Positions 13,667-19,176 of a stretch of 64,000 nucleotides of DNA are shown here, piece by piece; positions within the stretch are counted from its first letter, which is position 1, and each line of letters opens with the position of its first letter. A program made the position numbers and the translations under genes. The notes under the pieces are model-generated. The model saw only the letters and a list, made by a program, of their open reading frames with translations. It was not told where the DNA came from and did no database searches. Location: the sequence record NC_071039.1. The stretch is one strand, 5' to 3'.

Positions 13667-13740
13667 GTTTTGTTAACCTTTTATATACCTGTTAAATTTT
13701 ACATTATTTAGTTAATTTTATACCCATATAATACTGCTGA

Positions 13741-13748
13741 GATAAATA
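13741..13748 (+). promoter_or_regulatory. Late promoter motif GATAAATA upstream of the large ncRNA candidate
   Basis: Exact motif, with no + strand ORF downstream until 15180. Confidence 0.45.
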
Positions 13749-13797
13749 TGTGTGTAGATAACTTATAGCATTATTTTTAACGATTTTAGTACAATGG

Positions 13798-13826
13798 TTG
13801 ACAGTATTAATATCGTATGCTATAAT
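13798..13826 (+). promoter_or_regulatory. Perfect-consensus sigma70 promoter
   Basis: TTGACA-17 nt-TATAAT. Confidence 0.85.
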
Positions 13827-13831
13827 CCGCA

Positions 13832-14737
13832 ACATAATAAAACTAAAGAACGTATGTAACAAAACAGACGTTCTCCTAAGTGTTTTAAAGTTTTTGCTTA
13901 GGAAGACCCAGTTGTATGTTTAAAGGGTGAACGGTAACGGGCATTCTTGTTTAAGACTAGTTCTTATGAAGACATTGGCAACTAACATAGCAGCTTTGTT
14001 CCATAACTGGATATTGGTAGTAGAAACTATCCCCATCGTGCCTTTACTGTAGTACCGTTAGAGACGGAGATAACGCAGGAAAAAAGGTTATTTAAATTAT
14101 GATTTTGGGTGCTGCAGAACACTTTCGTAAACAAAAGGAATATAGTTTACGTATACACAACGGGAACGGGAAAAAGCTTTTTAAGCAAAAACGAGTCCCT
14201 GGTAATTGGTGTTTAACGGGAGTGACGTCCCAAATGTTATTCATCGATTAACACTGTAAGAAGGTTGTAAGGGTTATTGTGTTCGAAGTGGTTTACACAA
14301 CTGTTCTTCCTACATTTATGTACAGAAGTGTAAACGAAAGGATGTTGCTCTGGTAGAAAAAGATCAACGTACTTTATGACACTATCCTTGTGACATATGT
14401 ACTTGTACCAACAACAGCCGCAGGTTACGGATATGGTATTACAAACTGTACTGCGGTTCCGGGAGTTGAAAGTGGATGTTAGCTTAGGTGGCTGTTTGCT
14501 TAATTATAATGTTTAATTTAGGCAATATAAGCGTCGGGTGAGGCTTTCGTAGGTTGCGTGTTTATGCTACGGTGTAAATGGGCTAGACTACTGGCGCATA
14601 CATGAGTATTGTAGGATTGGCGCTTTAATAAAGAAATTTGTTAAAGTTTGAGTTTAGCTCCCCGCTCATTAGCAATAAACGTTGCTAGTCGATAGTATAC
14701 CCACGCCTAAATAATGCCGTCATTGTTTAGTTTTTTT
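13832..14737 (+). ncRNA. Candidate large structured noncoding RNA (~900 nt), family not recognised
   Basis: No ORF >=60 aa in six frames; bounded by consensus promoter and terminator; hand-counted lines 35-50% GC versus ~20% in the flank; many nested stems with G-U pairs on + strand. Confidence 0.65.
14707..14737 (+). terminator. Intrinsic terminator closing the ncRNA candidate
   Basis: CTAAATAATG-CCGT-CATTGTTTAG (10 bp, one G-U) followed by T7. Confidence 0.65.
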
Positions 14738-14742
14738 AAAAA

Positions 14743-15027
14743 ATATAATTGTCAATTATATGTCGTACGCATCTACCCCGAAAAGGGGTAGATGTTTATG
14801 ACTTTCGTTTACACTCATGTCATAATCAGTACACGCCATTTTAGGCCATTCTACATCAATACACTGCTTCTAGCAGTGTATTGGACATACAAAATAATCT
14901 TAAATTATATCAAATTTGTTTAATTACTTTAATTTTGTTACTTTAGTAACTTGTATTTTGTTTATATGAGTTGTAGTTTACGAAAACGAATATAAACAAA
15001 ATACATATGTGAACTGTAGTTCACATA
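14743..15027. repeat. Cluster of six inverted repeats in AT-rich DNA
   Basis: 14743-14761, 14770-14794, 14857-14883, 14937-14950, 14952-15005 (16-bp arms), 15006-15027. Confidence 0.8.
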
Positions 15028-15139
15028 CTTACTAACGTTGTATATTACGGTAATTCTATAAAATATCTCTATATAATTATAAACGTTTTATGGCATACTA
15101 CGACTGAACGAAATTGAAAATTAACTAGAGATTTAATTA

Positions 15140-15147
15140 GATAAATA
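15140..15147 (+). promoter_or_regulatory. Late promoter motif GATAAATA
   Basis: 33 nt upstream of ORF 15180. Confidence 0.55.
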
Positions 15148-15179
15148 ATATTGTAAAAATTGTATAGAGGTATACATCA

Positions 15180-15632
15180 ATGAACGATTACACACATTAC
15201 ACAGAGGAAGATTTCATATTTTTAGCATATGATTTAAATACTCAGCTTATAAATGATGGATATCCTGACGCTGCTGTAAAATTTATTACTAATCAGTTTA
15301 TTTTAGAGCATAGACATCCTGACGAAATAAAACGTTGTATAGGATGTAATTCTAAAATGTACGAAGATGTTATTGCTACTAAGAGAAATTTATCTGGTAA
15401 ATCGCATTGCAGACATTGCGAATCGAAACTTAGTATGTATAAGGAAGTTGTTAAGGAAGTAGCAAATACAACACAAATACTTCGCATACCAGAAAAACAT
15501 TTAAATTCAGTTAAACGATTAATTAGAATATATAATGAGCAAAACAAAACTAGTGCATATCAGAGTATAATAGTTAAAACAAAGAAACTTAACACAGGAG
15601 TTTCTAAAAAGTCAAAAAGAAAGGGACGTTAA
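15180..15632 (+). CDS. Hypothetical protein with CxxC...CxxC zinc ribbon and basic tail
   Basis: CIGC...CRHC; RBS GAGG; ends in bidirectional terminator. Confidence 0.7.
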   Translation: MNDYTHYTEEDFIFLAYDLNTQLINDGYPDAAVKFITNQFILEHRHPDEIKRCIGCNSKMYEDVIATKRNLSGKSHCRHCESKLSMYKEVVKEVANTTQILRIPEKHLNSVKRLIRIYNEQNKTSAYQSIIVKTKKLNTGVSKKSKRKGR

Positions 15633-15648
15633 TTGTCCCTTTCTTTTT
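15614..15648. terminator. Bidirectional terminator
   Basis: AAAAAGAAAGGGAC-GTTAATT-GTCCCTTTCTTTTT. Confidence 0.8.
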
Positions 15649-15874
15649 ATAGGAAGCTTCTACCTGTTTCTGCTTCAATTTTTTGTTTAATAAATTCTCC
15701 TAAACGTACCCGCTCTTGGTATGATAAAGACCAAGCAGTGTGCCAGTCAAATCCATTAATTTTATCACATATTTGGACTATTTCGCCTTCTAATCCCAGT
15801 GATTCTTGTTCATATTCTTGTATAACGTTCCTAATATCATCTGGGGTTCCCGATACTAGGATTCTCTGAAAAAA
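15647..15874 (-). CDS. gp51-like baseplate hub assembly chaperone domain without its own start codon (probable -1 frameshift extension of 15856..16710)
   Basis: Manual translation QRILVSGTPDDIRNVIQEYEQESLGLEGEIVQICDKINGFDWHTAWSLSYQERVRLGEFIKQKIEAETGRSFL*; no ATG/GTG/TTG after upstream in-frame TAA; stop abuts terminator. Confidence 0.7.
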   Translation of the reverse strand, partial: FFQRILVSGTPDDIRNVIQEYEQESLGLEGEIVQICDKINGFDWHTAWSLSYQERVRLGEFIKQKIEAETGRSFL

Positions 15875-16710
15875 CTTACTGGATTAAAATCTACAGGTAC
15901 TACAAAACTTTTATTACAGTTGTCACATACTGCATCAAAGTCGCCATTAACTCCTACTTGATTTATTTCTTTTAAAAGACTATCTATTTTATTAACATCT
16001 GCTCTATCTATATTTGCTATAAATTCTTTTATATCAGCTAGTGTCTGAGCAGTATTGTTAACTATATCTATACCGTTAGTTTCATCTACAATACGAACTA
16101 TTGTTTTTGCAATTAATTCGAAATTTAATGATGACAGTTCATTTATTGTATTAGAAAATGCAGAAAGTTTTTCTTCATCCGAATACATATCGCTTTGCAT
16201 TATTCTAATAAATTTTGCTTGTTCTAATGCAGTTTTTGCAACTGTCATATTATCTGAAAAATCATATGGTCTAATAAATATAGATAGACCGTTATCAAGA
16301 TTCACGACGTATTGATCTTCTAAATAAGTGGACGTATTAATAACATTTAATAAGTCTATTCCATATAAATTTTTATGATTACAATGCGGGCACGTAGAAG
16401 AAATATCTATTGTGTTACCGTACGATGCTGCTTTTATAGCAACACATATCATATGAATGTCATTAATCAAGAGTTTATTTACATCTTTAATTCCTGGTAC
16501 ACAACTCTTAATTACTTCTTTTAAGCCTTCGCCGTTCACTAATGCATCAGGATTTTTTATTAATACTTCATCTTTTCCTGTCATAGCATATACCCCTAGT
16601 TCTCCGGAATCGGTGTATTCTACAACATTTGATGGATAAAATGAATTTCCGCTGGGCAAACGAATATAAGATTTGAATGTTCTGTAATATTGATGTAATT
16701 TGTTGCTCAT
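15856..16710 (-). CDS. gp26: Baseplate hub assembly chaperone, T4 gp26-like
   Basis: YIRLPSG...VYAMTGKDE..IKNPDALVNGE...CPHC...C-terminal CDNC zinc knuckles. Confidence 0.8.
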   Translation of the reverse strand: MSNKLHQYYRTFKSYIRLPSGNSFYPSNVVEYTDSGELGVYAMTGKDEVLIKNPDALVNGEGLKEVIKSCVPGIKDVNKLLINDIHMICVAIKAASYGNTIDISSTCPHCNHKNLYGIDLLNVINTSTYLEDQYVVNLDNGLSIFIRPYDFSDNMTVAKTALEQAKFIRIMQSDMYSDEEKLSAFSNTINELSSLNFELIAKTIVRIVDETNGIDIVNNTAQTLADIKEFIANIDRADVNKIDSLLKEINQVGVNGDFDAVCDNCNKSFVVPVDFNPVSFFRES

Positions 16711-16729
16711 AGTGTGTATATGCTCTTTT

Positions 16730-16757
16730 GATAAATATGCTATATACCGTATTTATC
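16730..16757. promoter_or_regulatory. Two oppositely oriented late promoter motifs (GATAAATA + at 16730-16737; - at 16750-16757)
   Basis: In the 70-bp gap between divergent gp26-like and tape measure genes. Confidence 0.65.
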
Positions 16758-16779
16758 ATAGCATTTTATAGAGGTTCTT

Positions 16780-19176
16780 GTGGCAGAAGATATTAGAATT
16801 GTTGGCGTTGATCCTAGTGTCCCAGGCTGGGCTAGAGAAGAAACTCTTAATAAAATAGTATCTGAGTTAAAAAAACTCAATGGATCTAATACAAGAGAAA
16901 ACGACGAACTAAAAGATGCAGTAGATGAACTAGTTAGGGTAACCCGTAGATCTAACGAAGATACATCTAGAACAGATAATAACACTGAAATAAAAGAAGC
17001 ATTAAATAGATTATCTTCTTCGTTAAAACAACAGAAAAAATCTGATAATTCTTTATCTGCAAAGCAAGGTGGAAACAAACCTCCCGTATTGCCGCCTGAC
17101 AATAAGAAATCTAAATTAGATACAGATACTATAGGCGCATTTATTACTGCCGTCGGTACTGCTTCAAAGGCAGTAGCAAAATTTACTTTAAGTATGGCAT
17201 CTTTTGCAGTTGGCGGAAGTATATATGCTGCATTAAAGCAAGCTGCATCGTCGCAACTTACTTTATCTAGAGATTTATATAAATCAGGTTGGAACTTCGG
17301 AACGGTATTAGACGATGCATCTGGTATTATTAAATCTACCAACTTAGACGGTATTTCGTATGCCATAAAAGGTTTAGGTATAAATTCATCTGCATTATCT
17401 GAAGTATTAAAAGGCAATGAATTAGCAATACAAAAATACGGAATAAAATCGTTTGTAGATTTGTCTTCTAGCTTAAAAAGACAAGGCAATAGCTTAGGTA
17501 TGTCTTTAAAAGAAACAGCAGATTATGTAGGAGAATATTTAGAATCTCAACGTTTAATGGGTACATTTGATAAAATGCGCCAAGTAAACATGACTGCCCT
17601 TGCATCTAAAGCACTTAAAGATACCCAAGCATTTGCTACTGCATTAAGAATGTCTACAGAAGACCTTCAGGCAAAAATGAATGAAAGTTTAAAAGATGTA
17701 GACTTTCGTGTAGCAATAGAATCAGTTAACGCAAATTCTAAAGAAGCAGCCGCCCAAATTTATGCCGCTTTGCCGGAACAATTGCAAACTATGTTTAAGG
17801 TAGCTCTTAAAGATACTCCGTCTTTTATGGCATCTAAAGAATACGCCGATTTGATAAAATCCGGGCAAGGAGAATTAGCTAGACAAATAATTGCAGTATC
17901 ATCTGGACTGAAATCTGGTAATATAACTAACGGTCAGGCAGATGATGCAATGAAACGACTTATAAAATCTACTAGTTTTGCAGAAAGTACAATGCGTAGA
18001 CTTGCTATGCTAGATGCTCGTGGACTAATAGATAGTAATGTTGCTGCTGCTGCGTATGGATTAAAAGACCTTAGAGATAAAATGGATGGTCATTATGAAG
18101 GAATCCAAAATACAGAAGCTACAAATTTAGCAAAAGTCGAAGATGTAAGAAATAGAGCATTAGCTGTATTAGATACGTTTGTATCATCTATAATGAGAGC
18201 AGGATTCGAATCTGATGAATTTGCTAAATTATTAGATAATGCAAATGAAATGTTAAAAACAATTCATAATACAGCAGAAGACTTAGGTAAACAACTAGGT
18301 CCGGAATTATTTAAATTTGTTAACAATGCTATGGAATATCTAAATGGTTTATTTAGTAAAGATGTAGCAGGAAATATAAATGTAAATTATTCTAAAATAA
18401 TAGGAGATATTTTAACAAGTTCCGGTGCTGCTATAGTAGTTGGCGTTCTTGCTATTATGACTACATTTAAAGGTGTTGTTATTTCTTCGTTATCGTCGTG
18501 GCTTAAAGGTGCATCAGGACCTATGTCATCATTGGGCGGCACAGTAAAAACTATAGCAGGAAGATTAGGGGCATTTGCAGCACTAGCAGTATCGTTTACG
18601 AATGGAATAGGTAGATTAAGTCAATCAATTTCGGAAGGCGGCGATGCAATAGAATCTGCATTGAATTTTTTATCGGGCGCAGGCGAAGGTATAATAGATC
18701 CTGTGTTTAAATCCCTTACATGGGCAGCTAACAAATTAGGTATAGTATCTGATGAAGCAGCAGATGGATTTAGCAAATACATCAGTGATACTAATTTGCA
18801 ACAGTTCTTGGGTCTACAAGATATACCTATAAAAGTAGAAACTACTAATAAACCTGCATATACACCGCCTGGACCTACTGCTACTAAAACATCTGCATAC
18901 GGTAAAATAGAAACTCCGAAAGCTCCTGCTATAATTCCTACAGCTCAGCCAGATGTAGCAGACGCAGCAAAACAAAGTCCTACTCCTGTAGATCCTACTA
19001 GCAATATAAAGCCTATAGAAAATACAGGAATGAGTTCTCAAGACATGCTAAATAGAAGTACAGATAAACTTATACGTTTACAAGAAGAACAAATACGACA
19101 GTTACAAGAGCTTGTAGATATTCAGCGCAGAGCATTAGCTGCTACTAGAGAAACTGGATTTACAAGAACTAGGTAA
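16780..19176 (+). CDS. Probable tail tape measure protein
   Basis: 798 aa, Ala/Ser/Gly-rich helical, hydrophobic segments, next to gp26-like chaperone and portal. Confidence 0.65.
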   Translation: MAEDIRIVGVDPSVPGWAREETLNKIVSELKKLNGSNTRENDELKDAVDELVRVTRRSNEDTSRTDNNTEIKEALNRLSSSLKQQKKSDNSLSAKQGGNKPPVLPPDNKKSKLDTDTIGAFITAVGTASKAVAKFTLSMASFAVGGSIYAALKQAASSQLTLSRDLYKSGWNFGTVLDDASGIIKSTNLDGISYAIKGLGINSSALSEVLKGNELAIQKYGIKSFVDLSSSLKRQGNSLGMSLKETADYVGEYLESQRLMGTFDKMRQVNMTALASKALKDTQAFATALRMSTEDLQAKMNESLKDVDFRVAIESVNANSKEAAAQIYAALPEQLQTMFKVALKDTPSFMASKEYADLIKSGQGELARQIIAVSSGLKSGNITNGQADDAMKRLIKSTSFAESTMRRLAMLDARGLIDSNVAAAAYGLKDLRDKMDGHYEGIQNTEATNLAKVEDVRNRALAVLDTFVSSIMRAGFESDEFAKLLDNANEMLKTIHNTAEDLGKQLGPELFKFVNNAMEYLNGLFSKDVAGNINVNYSKIIGDILTSSGAAIVVGVLAIMTTFKGVVISSLSSWLKGASGPMSSLGGTVKTIAGRLGAFAALAVSFTNGIGRLSQSISEGGDAIESALNFLSGAGEGIIDPVFKSLTWAANKLGIVSDEAADGFSKYISDTNLQQFLGLQDIPIKVETTNKPAYTPPGPTATKTSAYGKIETPKAPAIIPTAQPDVADAAKQSPTPVDPTSNIKPIENTGMSSQDMLNRSTDKLIRLQEEQIRQLQELVDIQRRALAATRETGFTRTR

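Follow-up and report, generated by a model that had tools for sequence, protein, structure and literature searches.

A probable programmed -1 ribosomal frameshift at the end of the gp26-like baseplate hub gene of phage PA5oct and related jumbo phages

Lambda-like and P2/Mu-like phages are characterized by programmed frameshifting in their tail-assembly chaperone genes, and the E/E+E' pair of phage P2 represents a frameshift of the lambda G/GT type in myoviruses. The mechanism and the role of the G/GT pair in lambda have been reviewed (PMC5009743). In a review of the T4 tail, both gp26 and gp51 are given the role of 'hub assembly chaperone', and the data on the presence of T4 gp26 in the hub are described as conflicting (PMC3004832). 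Here, we analyze a gp26-like gene of a T4-related jumbo phage, near the 3' end of which a -1 frameshift had been proposed from the sequence of one genome (hereafter the initial annotation), and compare it with the corresponding loci of relatives. The window is the whole stretch of DNA that was analyzed, 64,000 nucleotides in length.

The locus resembles lambda gpG/gpGT in that a tail-assembly chaperone gene would be decoded with a -1 shift at an X XXY YYZ heptamer located a few codons ahead of its stop, in that a short and an extended product with a common N-terminal body would result, and in that the arrangement is conserved more than the sequence. It differs from lambda in several respects. 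The protein is of the PF12322 gp26 type and matches tail assembly chaperones significantly neither in fold nor in sequence (no tail assembly chaperone family in Pfam, PHROG or NCBIfam matched it), the gene is transcribed away from the putative tape measure gene instead of lying directly upstream of it in the same orientation, the extension comprises only about 75 aa, unlike in the lambda G/GT type, and the T4 homologue acts in hub assembly (PMC3004832). Neither the homology or fold nor the co-oriented position upstream of a tape measure gene, which define chaperones of the lambda G/GT type, was found. The initial annotation took the phage to use the logic of lambda G/GT; as an analogy this is reasonable, but the protein does not belong to that family and the gene arrangement differs.

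With T4 gp26, the protein shares the Pfam family, the fold class (as judged from viral predicted structures) and a position adjoining hub and tail genes. In contrast, gp26 of the T4-type phage SP18 has only 207 aa, contains no slippery heptamer and is followed by gene 25 after 15 nt, and therefore has no extension; consistently, a profile of the extension found no match in the 27 kb hub-gene cluster of SP18. The signal itself is similar to those of dnaX and the IS3-family transposases, which also combine a tandem-slippage heptamer with a downstream hairpin at a short spacer, but its heptamer is U-rich, unlike the bacterial A AAA AAG type. An upstream Shine-Dalgarno-like stimulator was not seen when the junction sequences were read by eye.

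The gp26-like gene and its neighbours

Region 15400-17000 of the window is 100% identical to Pseudomonas phage vB_PaeM_PA5oct (MK797984 / NC_071039, positions 77400-79000) and shares 98.6-99.1% identity with nine other jumbo-phage genomes of the genus Wroclawvirus (Arenbergviridae). The initial annotation had correctly recognized a T4-related jumbo phage and a gp26-like ORF of 284 aa on the minus strand, transcribed divergently from a large neighbour on the plus strand. This baseplate hub assembly gene (15856-16710, read from 16710 to a TAG ending at 15856) encodes a product that matched the Pfam family PF12322 'T4 bacteriophage base plate protein' (gp26; T4_baseplate) with E = 2.9e-25 and 89.7 bits at a cut-off of 24.5. 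The alignment covered positions 16-219 of the 219 positions of the profile and hence reached the profile end, a significant full-length match that places the protein in the T4 gp26 baseplate hub family. It also matched PHROG 150 'baseplate hub', and a Foldseek search of BFVD with its model retrieved 'Baseplate hub assembly protein, T4-like' (E = 2.8e-27), while a direct hhalign comparison with SP18 gp26 alone gave a weak match. Other T4-like groups matched by fold as well, among them cyanophages, KVP40-like phages and myoviruses of Campylobacter and Bacillus. The PA5oct RefSeq record carries the note 'ESI-MS/MS' on neighbouring genes and none on the hub gene. In the record of phage CBB the homologue of the hub gene is named a structural protein, and the excerpted part of the CBB proteomics table does not list it.

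The AlphaFold model of the 0-frame protein is of high confidence (pLDDT 91.3, pTM 0.87) except for the last ~10 residues, over which the confidence drops (mean pLDDT of the final block 64), and the slip site described below sits in this low-confidence C-terminal tail of an otherwise confident fold. Neither the 0-frame model nor that of the extension had a significant Foldseek match in the PDB. For the gp26 model (m73302b7905ef, window 15859-16710), the PDB match of highest probability among those listed was the HK97 tail assembly chaperone 2ob9, which with E = 2.2, a probability of 0.15 and a TM score of 0.39 is not significant and may at best serve as a lead for a domain-level comparison. A separate observation from the alignments of the gp26-like family concerns conserved Cys pairs, one of the CPxC type in the middle of the protein and a CxxC near the C-terminus, which in the window protein (15856-16710, minus strand) are located at residues about 107-110 and 263-266. 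One gp26-like homologue was named by its source after a zinc ribbon of the TFIIS/RpoM type, and the pattern of the Cys pairs suggests a split zinc-binding site directly upstream of the slip site.

The divergent neighbour (16780-19176, plus strand) is an ORF of 798 aa whose product is a virion protein in PA5oct, according to the RefSeq note 'ESI-MS/MS', as is its homologue in CBB. The initial annotation had called it the tape measure gene, but similarity to gp29 or any family was not detectable: comparisons with gp29 gave E = 1.3 in BLASTP and a probability of 0.8% in hhalign, Pfam, PHROG, NCBIfam and the PDB contained no match, and tblastn found matches only in Wroclawvirus. In relatives, the interval from the gp26-like to the portal gene is occupied by syntenic large ORFs of 720-891 aa or more, and in the RaK2 record an annotation note cites tape-measure similarity for the homologue. 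The neighbour is a candidate tape measure protein, and the evidence for this role consists of synteny, size, virion mass spectrometry and the RaK2 note. Peptidoglycan-hydrolase domains are present in some tape measure proteins, and one of four syntenic homologues of the neighbour (alignment A5) weakly matched a VanY D-Ala-D-Ala carboxypeptidase (E = 1.7e-4), which could be taken as a faint hint in the direction of the tape-measure assignment.

Farther from the hub gene, a segment of ~1.5 kb (window 13700-15180) is of low coding density; its ORFs are all tiny (40-52 codons, both strands) and are annotated inconsistently between Wroclawvirus records. Rfam and tRNA scans of this segment yielded no matches; ncRNAs have been reported from somewhere in the PA5oct genome in the PA5oct paper. 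Rfam searches of the frameshift site and of the whole window had no matches either, and a tRNA scan found none.

Frameshift signal and -1 frame in the window

Three codons before the 0-frame TAG (15858-15856), the hub ORF contains the sequence T TTT TTC (15874-15868, minus strand). In the mRNA this is the slippery heptamer U UUU UUC, which has the phase X XXY YYZ when read in the 0 frame. A hairpin (15829-15861, minus strand) follows 6 nt after the heptamer, and the 0-frame TAG falls within its 5' arm. In the minimum-free-energy fold, a 10-bp lower stem (15861-15852 paired with 15838-15829) carries a 3-bp GGG/CCC top. The hairpin has a folding energy of -13.8 kcal/mol and a z-score of -2.4, and only 1 of 200 shuffled sequences folded as well. 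The initial annotation had described a 9-bp stem after a spacer of 7 nt; this stem is real and is lengthened to 10 bp by the fold, with a spacer of 6 nt.

The -1 frame (15647-15868, minus strand) is open from 15868 to a TAA at 15649-15647, thus comprising 73 codons plus the stop. It is closed upstream by another TAA (15886-15884) and contains no ATG, GTG or TTG anywhere. Directly at the -1 stop begins a terminator-like hairpin (15649-15613) of 15 pairs followed by a T-run, which the -1 frame has in common with the convergent gene at 15180-15632 on the plus strand. This hairpin was the only one of its kind found by a terminator scan in the neighbourhood, it is placed behind the -1 stop rather than behind that of the 0 frame, and the sequence flanking it is kept in L005, the closest relative outside of Wroclawvirus. 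In these points the initial annotation proved accurate, as the in-frame heptamer, the open -1 frame of 73 codons bounded upstream by TAA and devoid of ATG, GTG and TTG, and its end at a bidirectional terminator were all present, and the product sizes of 284 aa and ~354 aa follow from the coordinates.

The protein sequence of the extension is 100% identical across 11 Wroclawvirus genomes, and the two substitutions found among four aligned Wroclawvirus sequences are both synonymous in the -1 frame. Structure prediction suggests that the extension forms a small three-helix unit (pLDDT 77). As a single sequence it had no match in Pfam, PHROG or NCBIfam, and a word-index protein search yielded no candidates. 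A profile built from 40 extensions retrieved only noise from the PDB and matched only PHROG 18291, a family of unknown function that holds such small ORFs. When 1.84 billion representatives were searched exhaustively by HMMER, the 73 aa extension recovered three relatives, all of them stand-alone ORFs of 69-74 aa, and the search revealed no in-frame fusion of hub gene and extension, which is expected if the ratio of two products matters. P0095 (361 aa) was considered as a natural fusion and rejected, because only its N-terminal half is common to the hub protein and it contains no extension.

According to the initial annotation the extension was gp51-like. This assignment had to be discarded, as BLASTP against gp51 of SP18 gave E = 0.97 and hhalign of the 40-sequence profile against the same protein a probability of 0.8%. 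The sole likeness is that gene 51 adjoins gene 26 in T4-type genomes; gp51 has 250 aa and is encoded by a separate, divergently transcribed gene, unlike the PA5oct extension.

In public records the region is treated in different ways. The PA5oct RefSeq, Paride, MIJ3 and RaK2 records leave ~220 nt or more unannotated 3' of the hub gene, the sole ORF called in the -1 frame region of PAC2 is on the opposite strand, and the records of 121Q, CBB, XacN1 and Atu_ph07 contain a separate small hypothetical protein 3' of the hub gene. None of the database records examined annotates a join of the 0 and -1 frames.

Conservation of the site across relatives

With the 0-frame product as query, a protein search yielded 96 homologues, most of which have 278-287 aa and end at the same point. 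In all searches, the 0-frame product and the extension served as separate queries. At the DNA level, we compared four of these homologues, 80 IMG/VR loci obtained by a family alignment search (the best 80 of at least 594) and five cultured jumbo phages (121Q, RaK2, Atu_ph07, CBB and XacN1). The resulting set of 81 distinct loci (five cultured phages and 76 metagenomic or viral-contig loci) forms 22 single-linkage lineages at 50% protein identity and 12 at 40%; pairwise identity has a median of 34%.

Close to the stop, 81/81 loci, and thus all 22 lineages defined at 50% identity, contained an in-phase slippery heptamer. TTTTTTC was the most frequent type (65 loci), followed by AAATTTT (12) and TTTTTTT (4), and the heptamer was located 1-6 codons before the 0-frame stop in 79 of the 81 loci. 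Elsewhere in these genes, in-phase X XXY YYZ motifs occur at 89 of 20,703 codon positions (0.43%), so the occurrence of the heptamer at the 3' end of every locus is far above chance. The conservation of UUUUUUC and of the frame relation in homologues, which the initial annotation had named as a check, is borne out by these counts, for UUUUUUC itself in 65 of the 81 loci, and by the homology of the -1 ORFs described below. In L065/L066 (about 2322-2534) and in L095 of XacN1 (2271-2513), a U UUU UUU heptamer precedes the 0-frame stop by 10-11 codons as compared to 1-6 elsewhere, resulting in a longer overlap of the two frames.

At the U-type sites, the codon preceding the slip codons has T as its third base in every case, whichever of N, S, D, T, H, A or R it encodes, whereas codons for these amino acids elsewhere in the genes are T-ending in only 21-67% of the cases. 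Likewise, the first Phe codon at the site is always TTT, while TTC makes up 30% of the Phe codons elsewhere. In the A AAU UUU subgroup, the Phe-Phe motif is lost and a slippery heptamer is kept, and the preceding codon, GTA or ACA, supplies the required A as its last base. Judged from this codon usage, the constraint at the heptamer is on nucleotides, not on amino acids.

Since the site is a homopolymer run, slippage could in principle also take place during transcription, as is the case in some bacterial and viral genes (PMC5009743); RNA polymerase would then generate a minority of mRNAs of altered run length, which would be read as the fusion. The run is short, however, with six T and only five in the A AAU UUU subgroup, and the phase of the heptamer relative to the 0 frame is invariant in 81/81 loci, which counts against polymerase slippage because this phase matters for tRNA re-pairing only. 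In addition, a hairpin is conserved at a spacing typical of ribosomal frameshift stimulators. We regard transcriptional slippage as very unlikely.

This hairpin was assessed by counting pairs within one subgroup and by per-locus z-scores with controls. The 70 nt after the heptamer had a mean z of -1.95, with 37 of 80 loci below -2, and the 50 nt after the heptamer (77 loci, matched controls) a mean z of -1.79 and a mean energy of -11.5 kcal/mol. In contrast, control windows located 300 or 150 nt upstream or 120 nt downstream had z-scores of about 0 and energies of -4.7 to -7.0 kcal/mol. Paired comparisons of site and control folding gave p-values of 1e-8 to 1e-11, which are inflated as the loci are related. 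These data show that the RNA structure is specific to the heptamer site. In L005, an equivalent hairpin exists with changed bases, including one compensatory pair. In the A AAU UUU subgroup, which aligns without gaps, pairing across a 9-bp helix amounts to 83%, four of its pairs have changed on both sides, and it scored better in the correct register than in all slid controls; the support from covariation is partial and limited to this one subgroup. RNAalifold, applied to a mixed set of 14 sequences, found no single consensus fold across subgroups, because the 3' arms are out of register between them.

Downstream of the heptamer, the -1 ORF extends over 69-91 codons in the 77 loci with a long enough contig (median 76 across all loci), whereas the median open length in the +1 frame is only 8 codons. 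The -1 encoded pieces are homologous; their alignment starts at the first residue following the site, is nearly free of gaps and shows an invariant or nearly invariant Arg and a W..AW.LS..ER-like block. Among 79 moderately diverged pairs, differences in the -1 frame were distributed as 1216/785/2594 over codon positions 1/2/3, a substitution pattern that is, on the evidence of these alignments, of the coding type. One locus, L057 (2361-2633), has a -1 ORF of 91 codons compared to 69-81 elsewhere, which may reflect a C-terminal addition to the extension.

An explanation that must be weighed against these data is that the 73-codon ORF is a separate small gene, expressed by coupled re-initiation or from a non-canonical start, and that the U-run only encodes a Phe-Phe motif. 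In T4, one product of gene 26 starts internally at an AUU, a protein of 58-73 aa is annotated at this position by gene callers and in several records, ORFs of this kind are collected in PHROG 18291, and an ATG is located at or beside the 0-frame stop in 121Q and L009. Yet, in 42 of the 77 -1 ORFs no canonical start (ATG, GTG or TTG) exists between the upstream stop and codon +12, a start preceded by a Shine-Dalgarno-like word was found in only 5, and the window has none. Moreover, the conservation of the -1 frame begins directly after the heptamer, within the overlap with the 0 frame, the synonymous positions of the heptamer are fixed in 22 lineages, one subgroup remains slippery without encoding Phe-Phe, and a Phe-Phe motif would leave the site-specific hairpin unexplained. 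A separate gene therefore seems improbable to us as the explanation for the family as a whole. In some lineages (L091 of 121Q, about 2208-2429, and L009, 3816-4052), the 0-frame stop is overlapped or directly adjoined by a -1 frame ATG in a TAATG-like arrangement, and there coupled re-initiation could produce a free small protein beside the frameshift product.

Homopolymer runs are error-prone in some sequencing chemistries, and the two frames might be thought to result from an assembly error in the run or from the recent breakage of a single gene. The same frame relation was found in 11 independently sequenced Wroclawvirus genomes and in the 81 loci, which originate from many projects. No relative has a single fused ORF, and the match of the 0-frame protein to the Pfam profile extends to the profile end. 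By the comparative sequence data this explanation, to which we assign next to no probability, is already refuted. The initial annotation had expected homologues to have neither a fused ORF nor a proper start codon; the former holds throughout, and the latter applies to the 42 of 77 -1 ORFs mentioned above, with 121Q and L009 having an ATG at or near the stop.

Proposed mechanism, distribution and significance

The features that characterize programmed -1 ribosomal frameshifting were found together at this locus, namely an in-phase X XXY YYZ heptamer, an RNA structure within ~5-9 nt downstream, and a -1 frame that is open from the site, coding and without a start of its own. We consider it highly probable (roughly 85%) that the gp26-like gene makes an extended product by programmed -1 ribosomal frameshifting, as the initial annotation had proposed, and this reading is backed by the conserved heptamer, the -1 ORF, the coding-type substitutions and the RNA structure.

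In the mechanism that we propose, most ribosomes would read the 0 frame to the TAG and produce the 284 aa protein. Some would pause on the hairpin 6 nt downstream with two Phe-tRNAs on UUU UUC, these tRNAs would slip back by one base on U UUU UUC, and the shifted ribosomes would continue for 73 codons in the -1 frame to the TAA at the terminator. The predicted product of ~354 aa would consist of the whole gp26 body, a flexible linker and a small helical C-terminal domain. The slip on the ribosome, its efficiency and its purpose are what we infer. By analogy with lambda gpG/gpGT (PMC5009743), the purpose would most likely be a fixed ratio between a hub or tail assembly chaperone and an extended form of it that brings in a second binding partner, which is the most economical model but has no backing from homology.

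The PA5oct omics paper does not mention a longer hub product, and a trans-frame protein is not reported in the published PA5oct, CBB and phAPEC6 papers. No frameshift in gp26 or a baseplate-hub gene is described in these three papers, a comprehensive recoding review or the PRFect paper. Searches of PubMed Central and bioRxiv, to which the literature survey was confined with subscription-only literature outside its range, retrieved no relevant description of a frameshift in gp26, in baseplate hub genes or in jumbo phages. A -1 frameshift in a tail-assembly gene is known as such, whereas its occurrence in the gp26 protein family and in this gene arrangement is new; the site is deeply conserved and unannotated.

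The long gp26 subfamily with this signal comprises about 94-97 cultured jumbo phages (Rak2-like and PA5oct-like phages, Atu_ph07, XacN1, SCTP-2 and others) and at least 594 IMG/VR loci, the best 80 of which were examined. A tblastn search with RaK2 gp26 reached no further groups, and a 50 kb stretch of cyanophage S-CAM22 contained no annotated hub gene.

It is conceivable, although on the whole we think it doubtful, that the short and extended gp26 forms are the counterpart of lambda G/GT in the T4 superfamily, a non-homologous chaperone of hub and tape-measure assembly in which the fixed ratio of two products evolved independently, and that classical T4-type phages lost the extension secondarily. 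If this were true, the frameshift principle would be general to long-tailed phages, the T4 lineage included.

With the reading of programmed -1 frameshifting, a known device now appears in a different family, the gp26 hub-assembly protein of T4-related jumbo phages. This clade is large and ecologically widespread, and it includes therapy candidates such as PA5oct and the RaK2/121Q group. In the records examined, the extension was either missed or called a hypothetical small protein, and recognizing it would correct the annotation in about a hundred genomes of cultured phages and in hundreds from metagenomes. The deeply conserved U UUU UUC / A AAU UUU heptamer with its hairpin would join the few sites in bacterial viruses that have comparative support, and it would make the role of gp26 in hub and tail-length assembly, which is poorly understood, accessible to tests.
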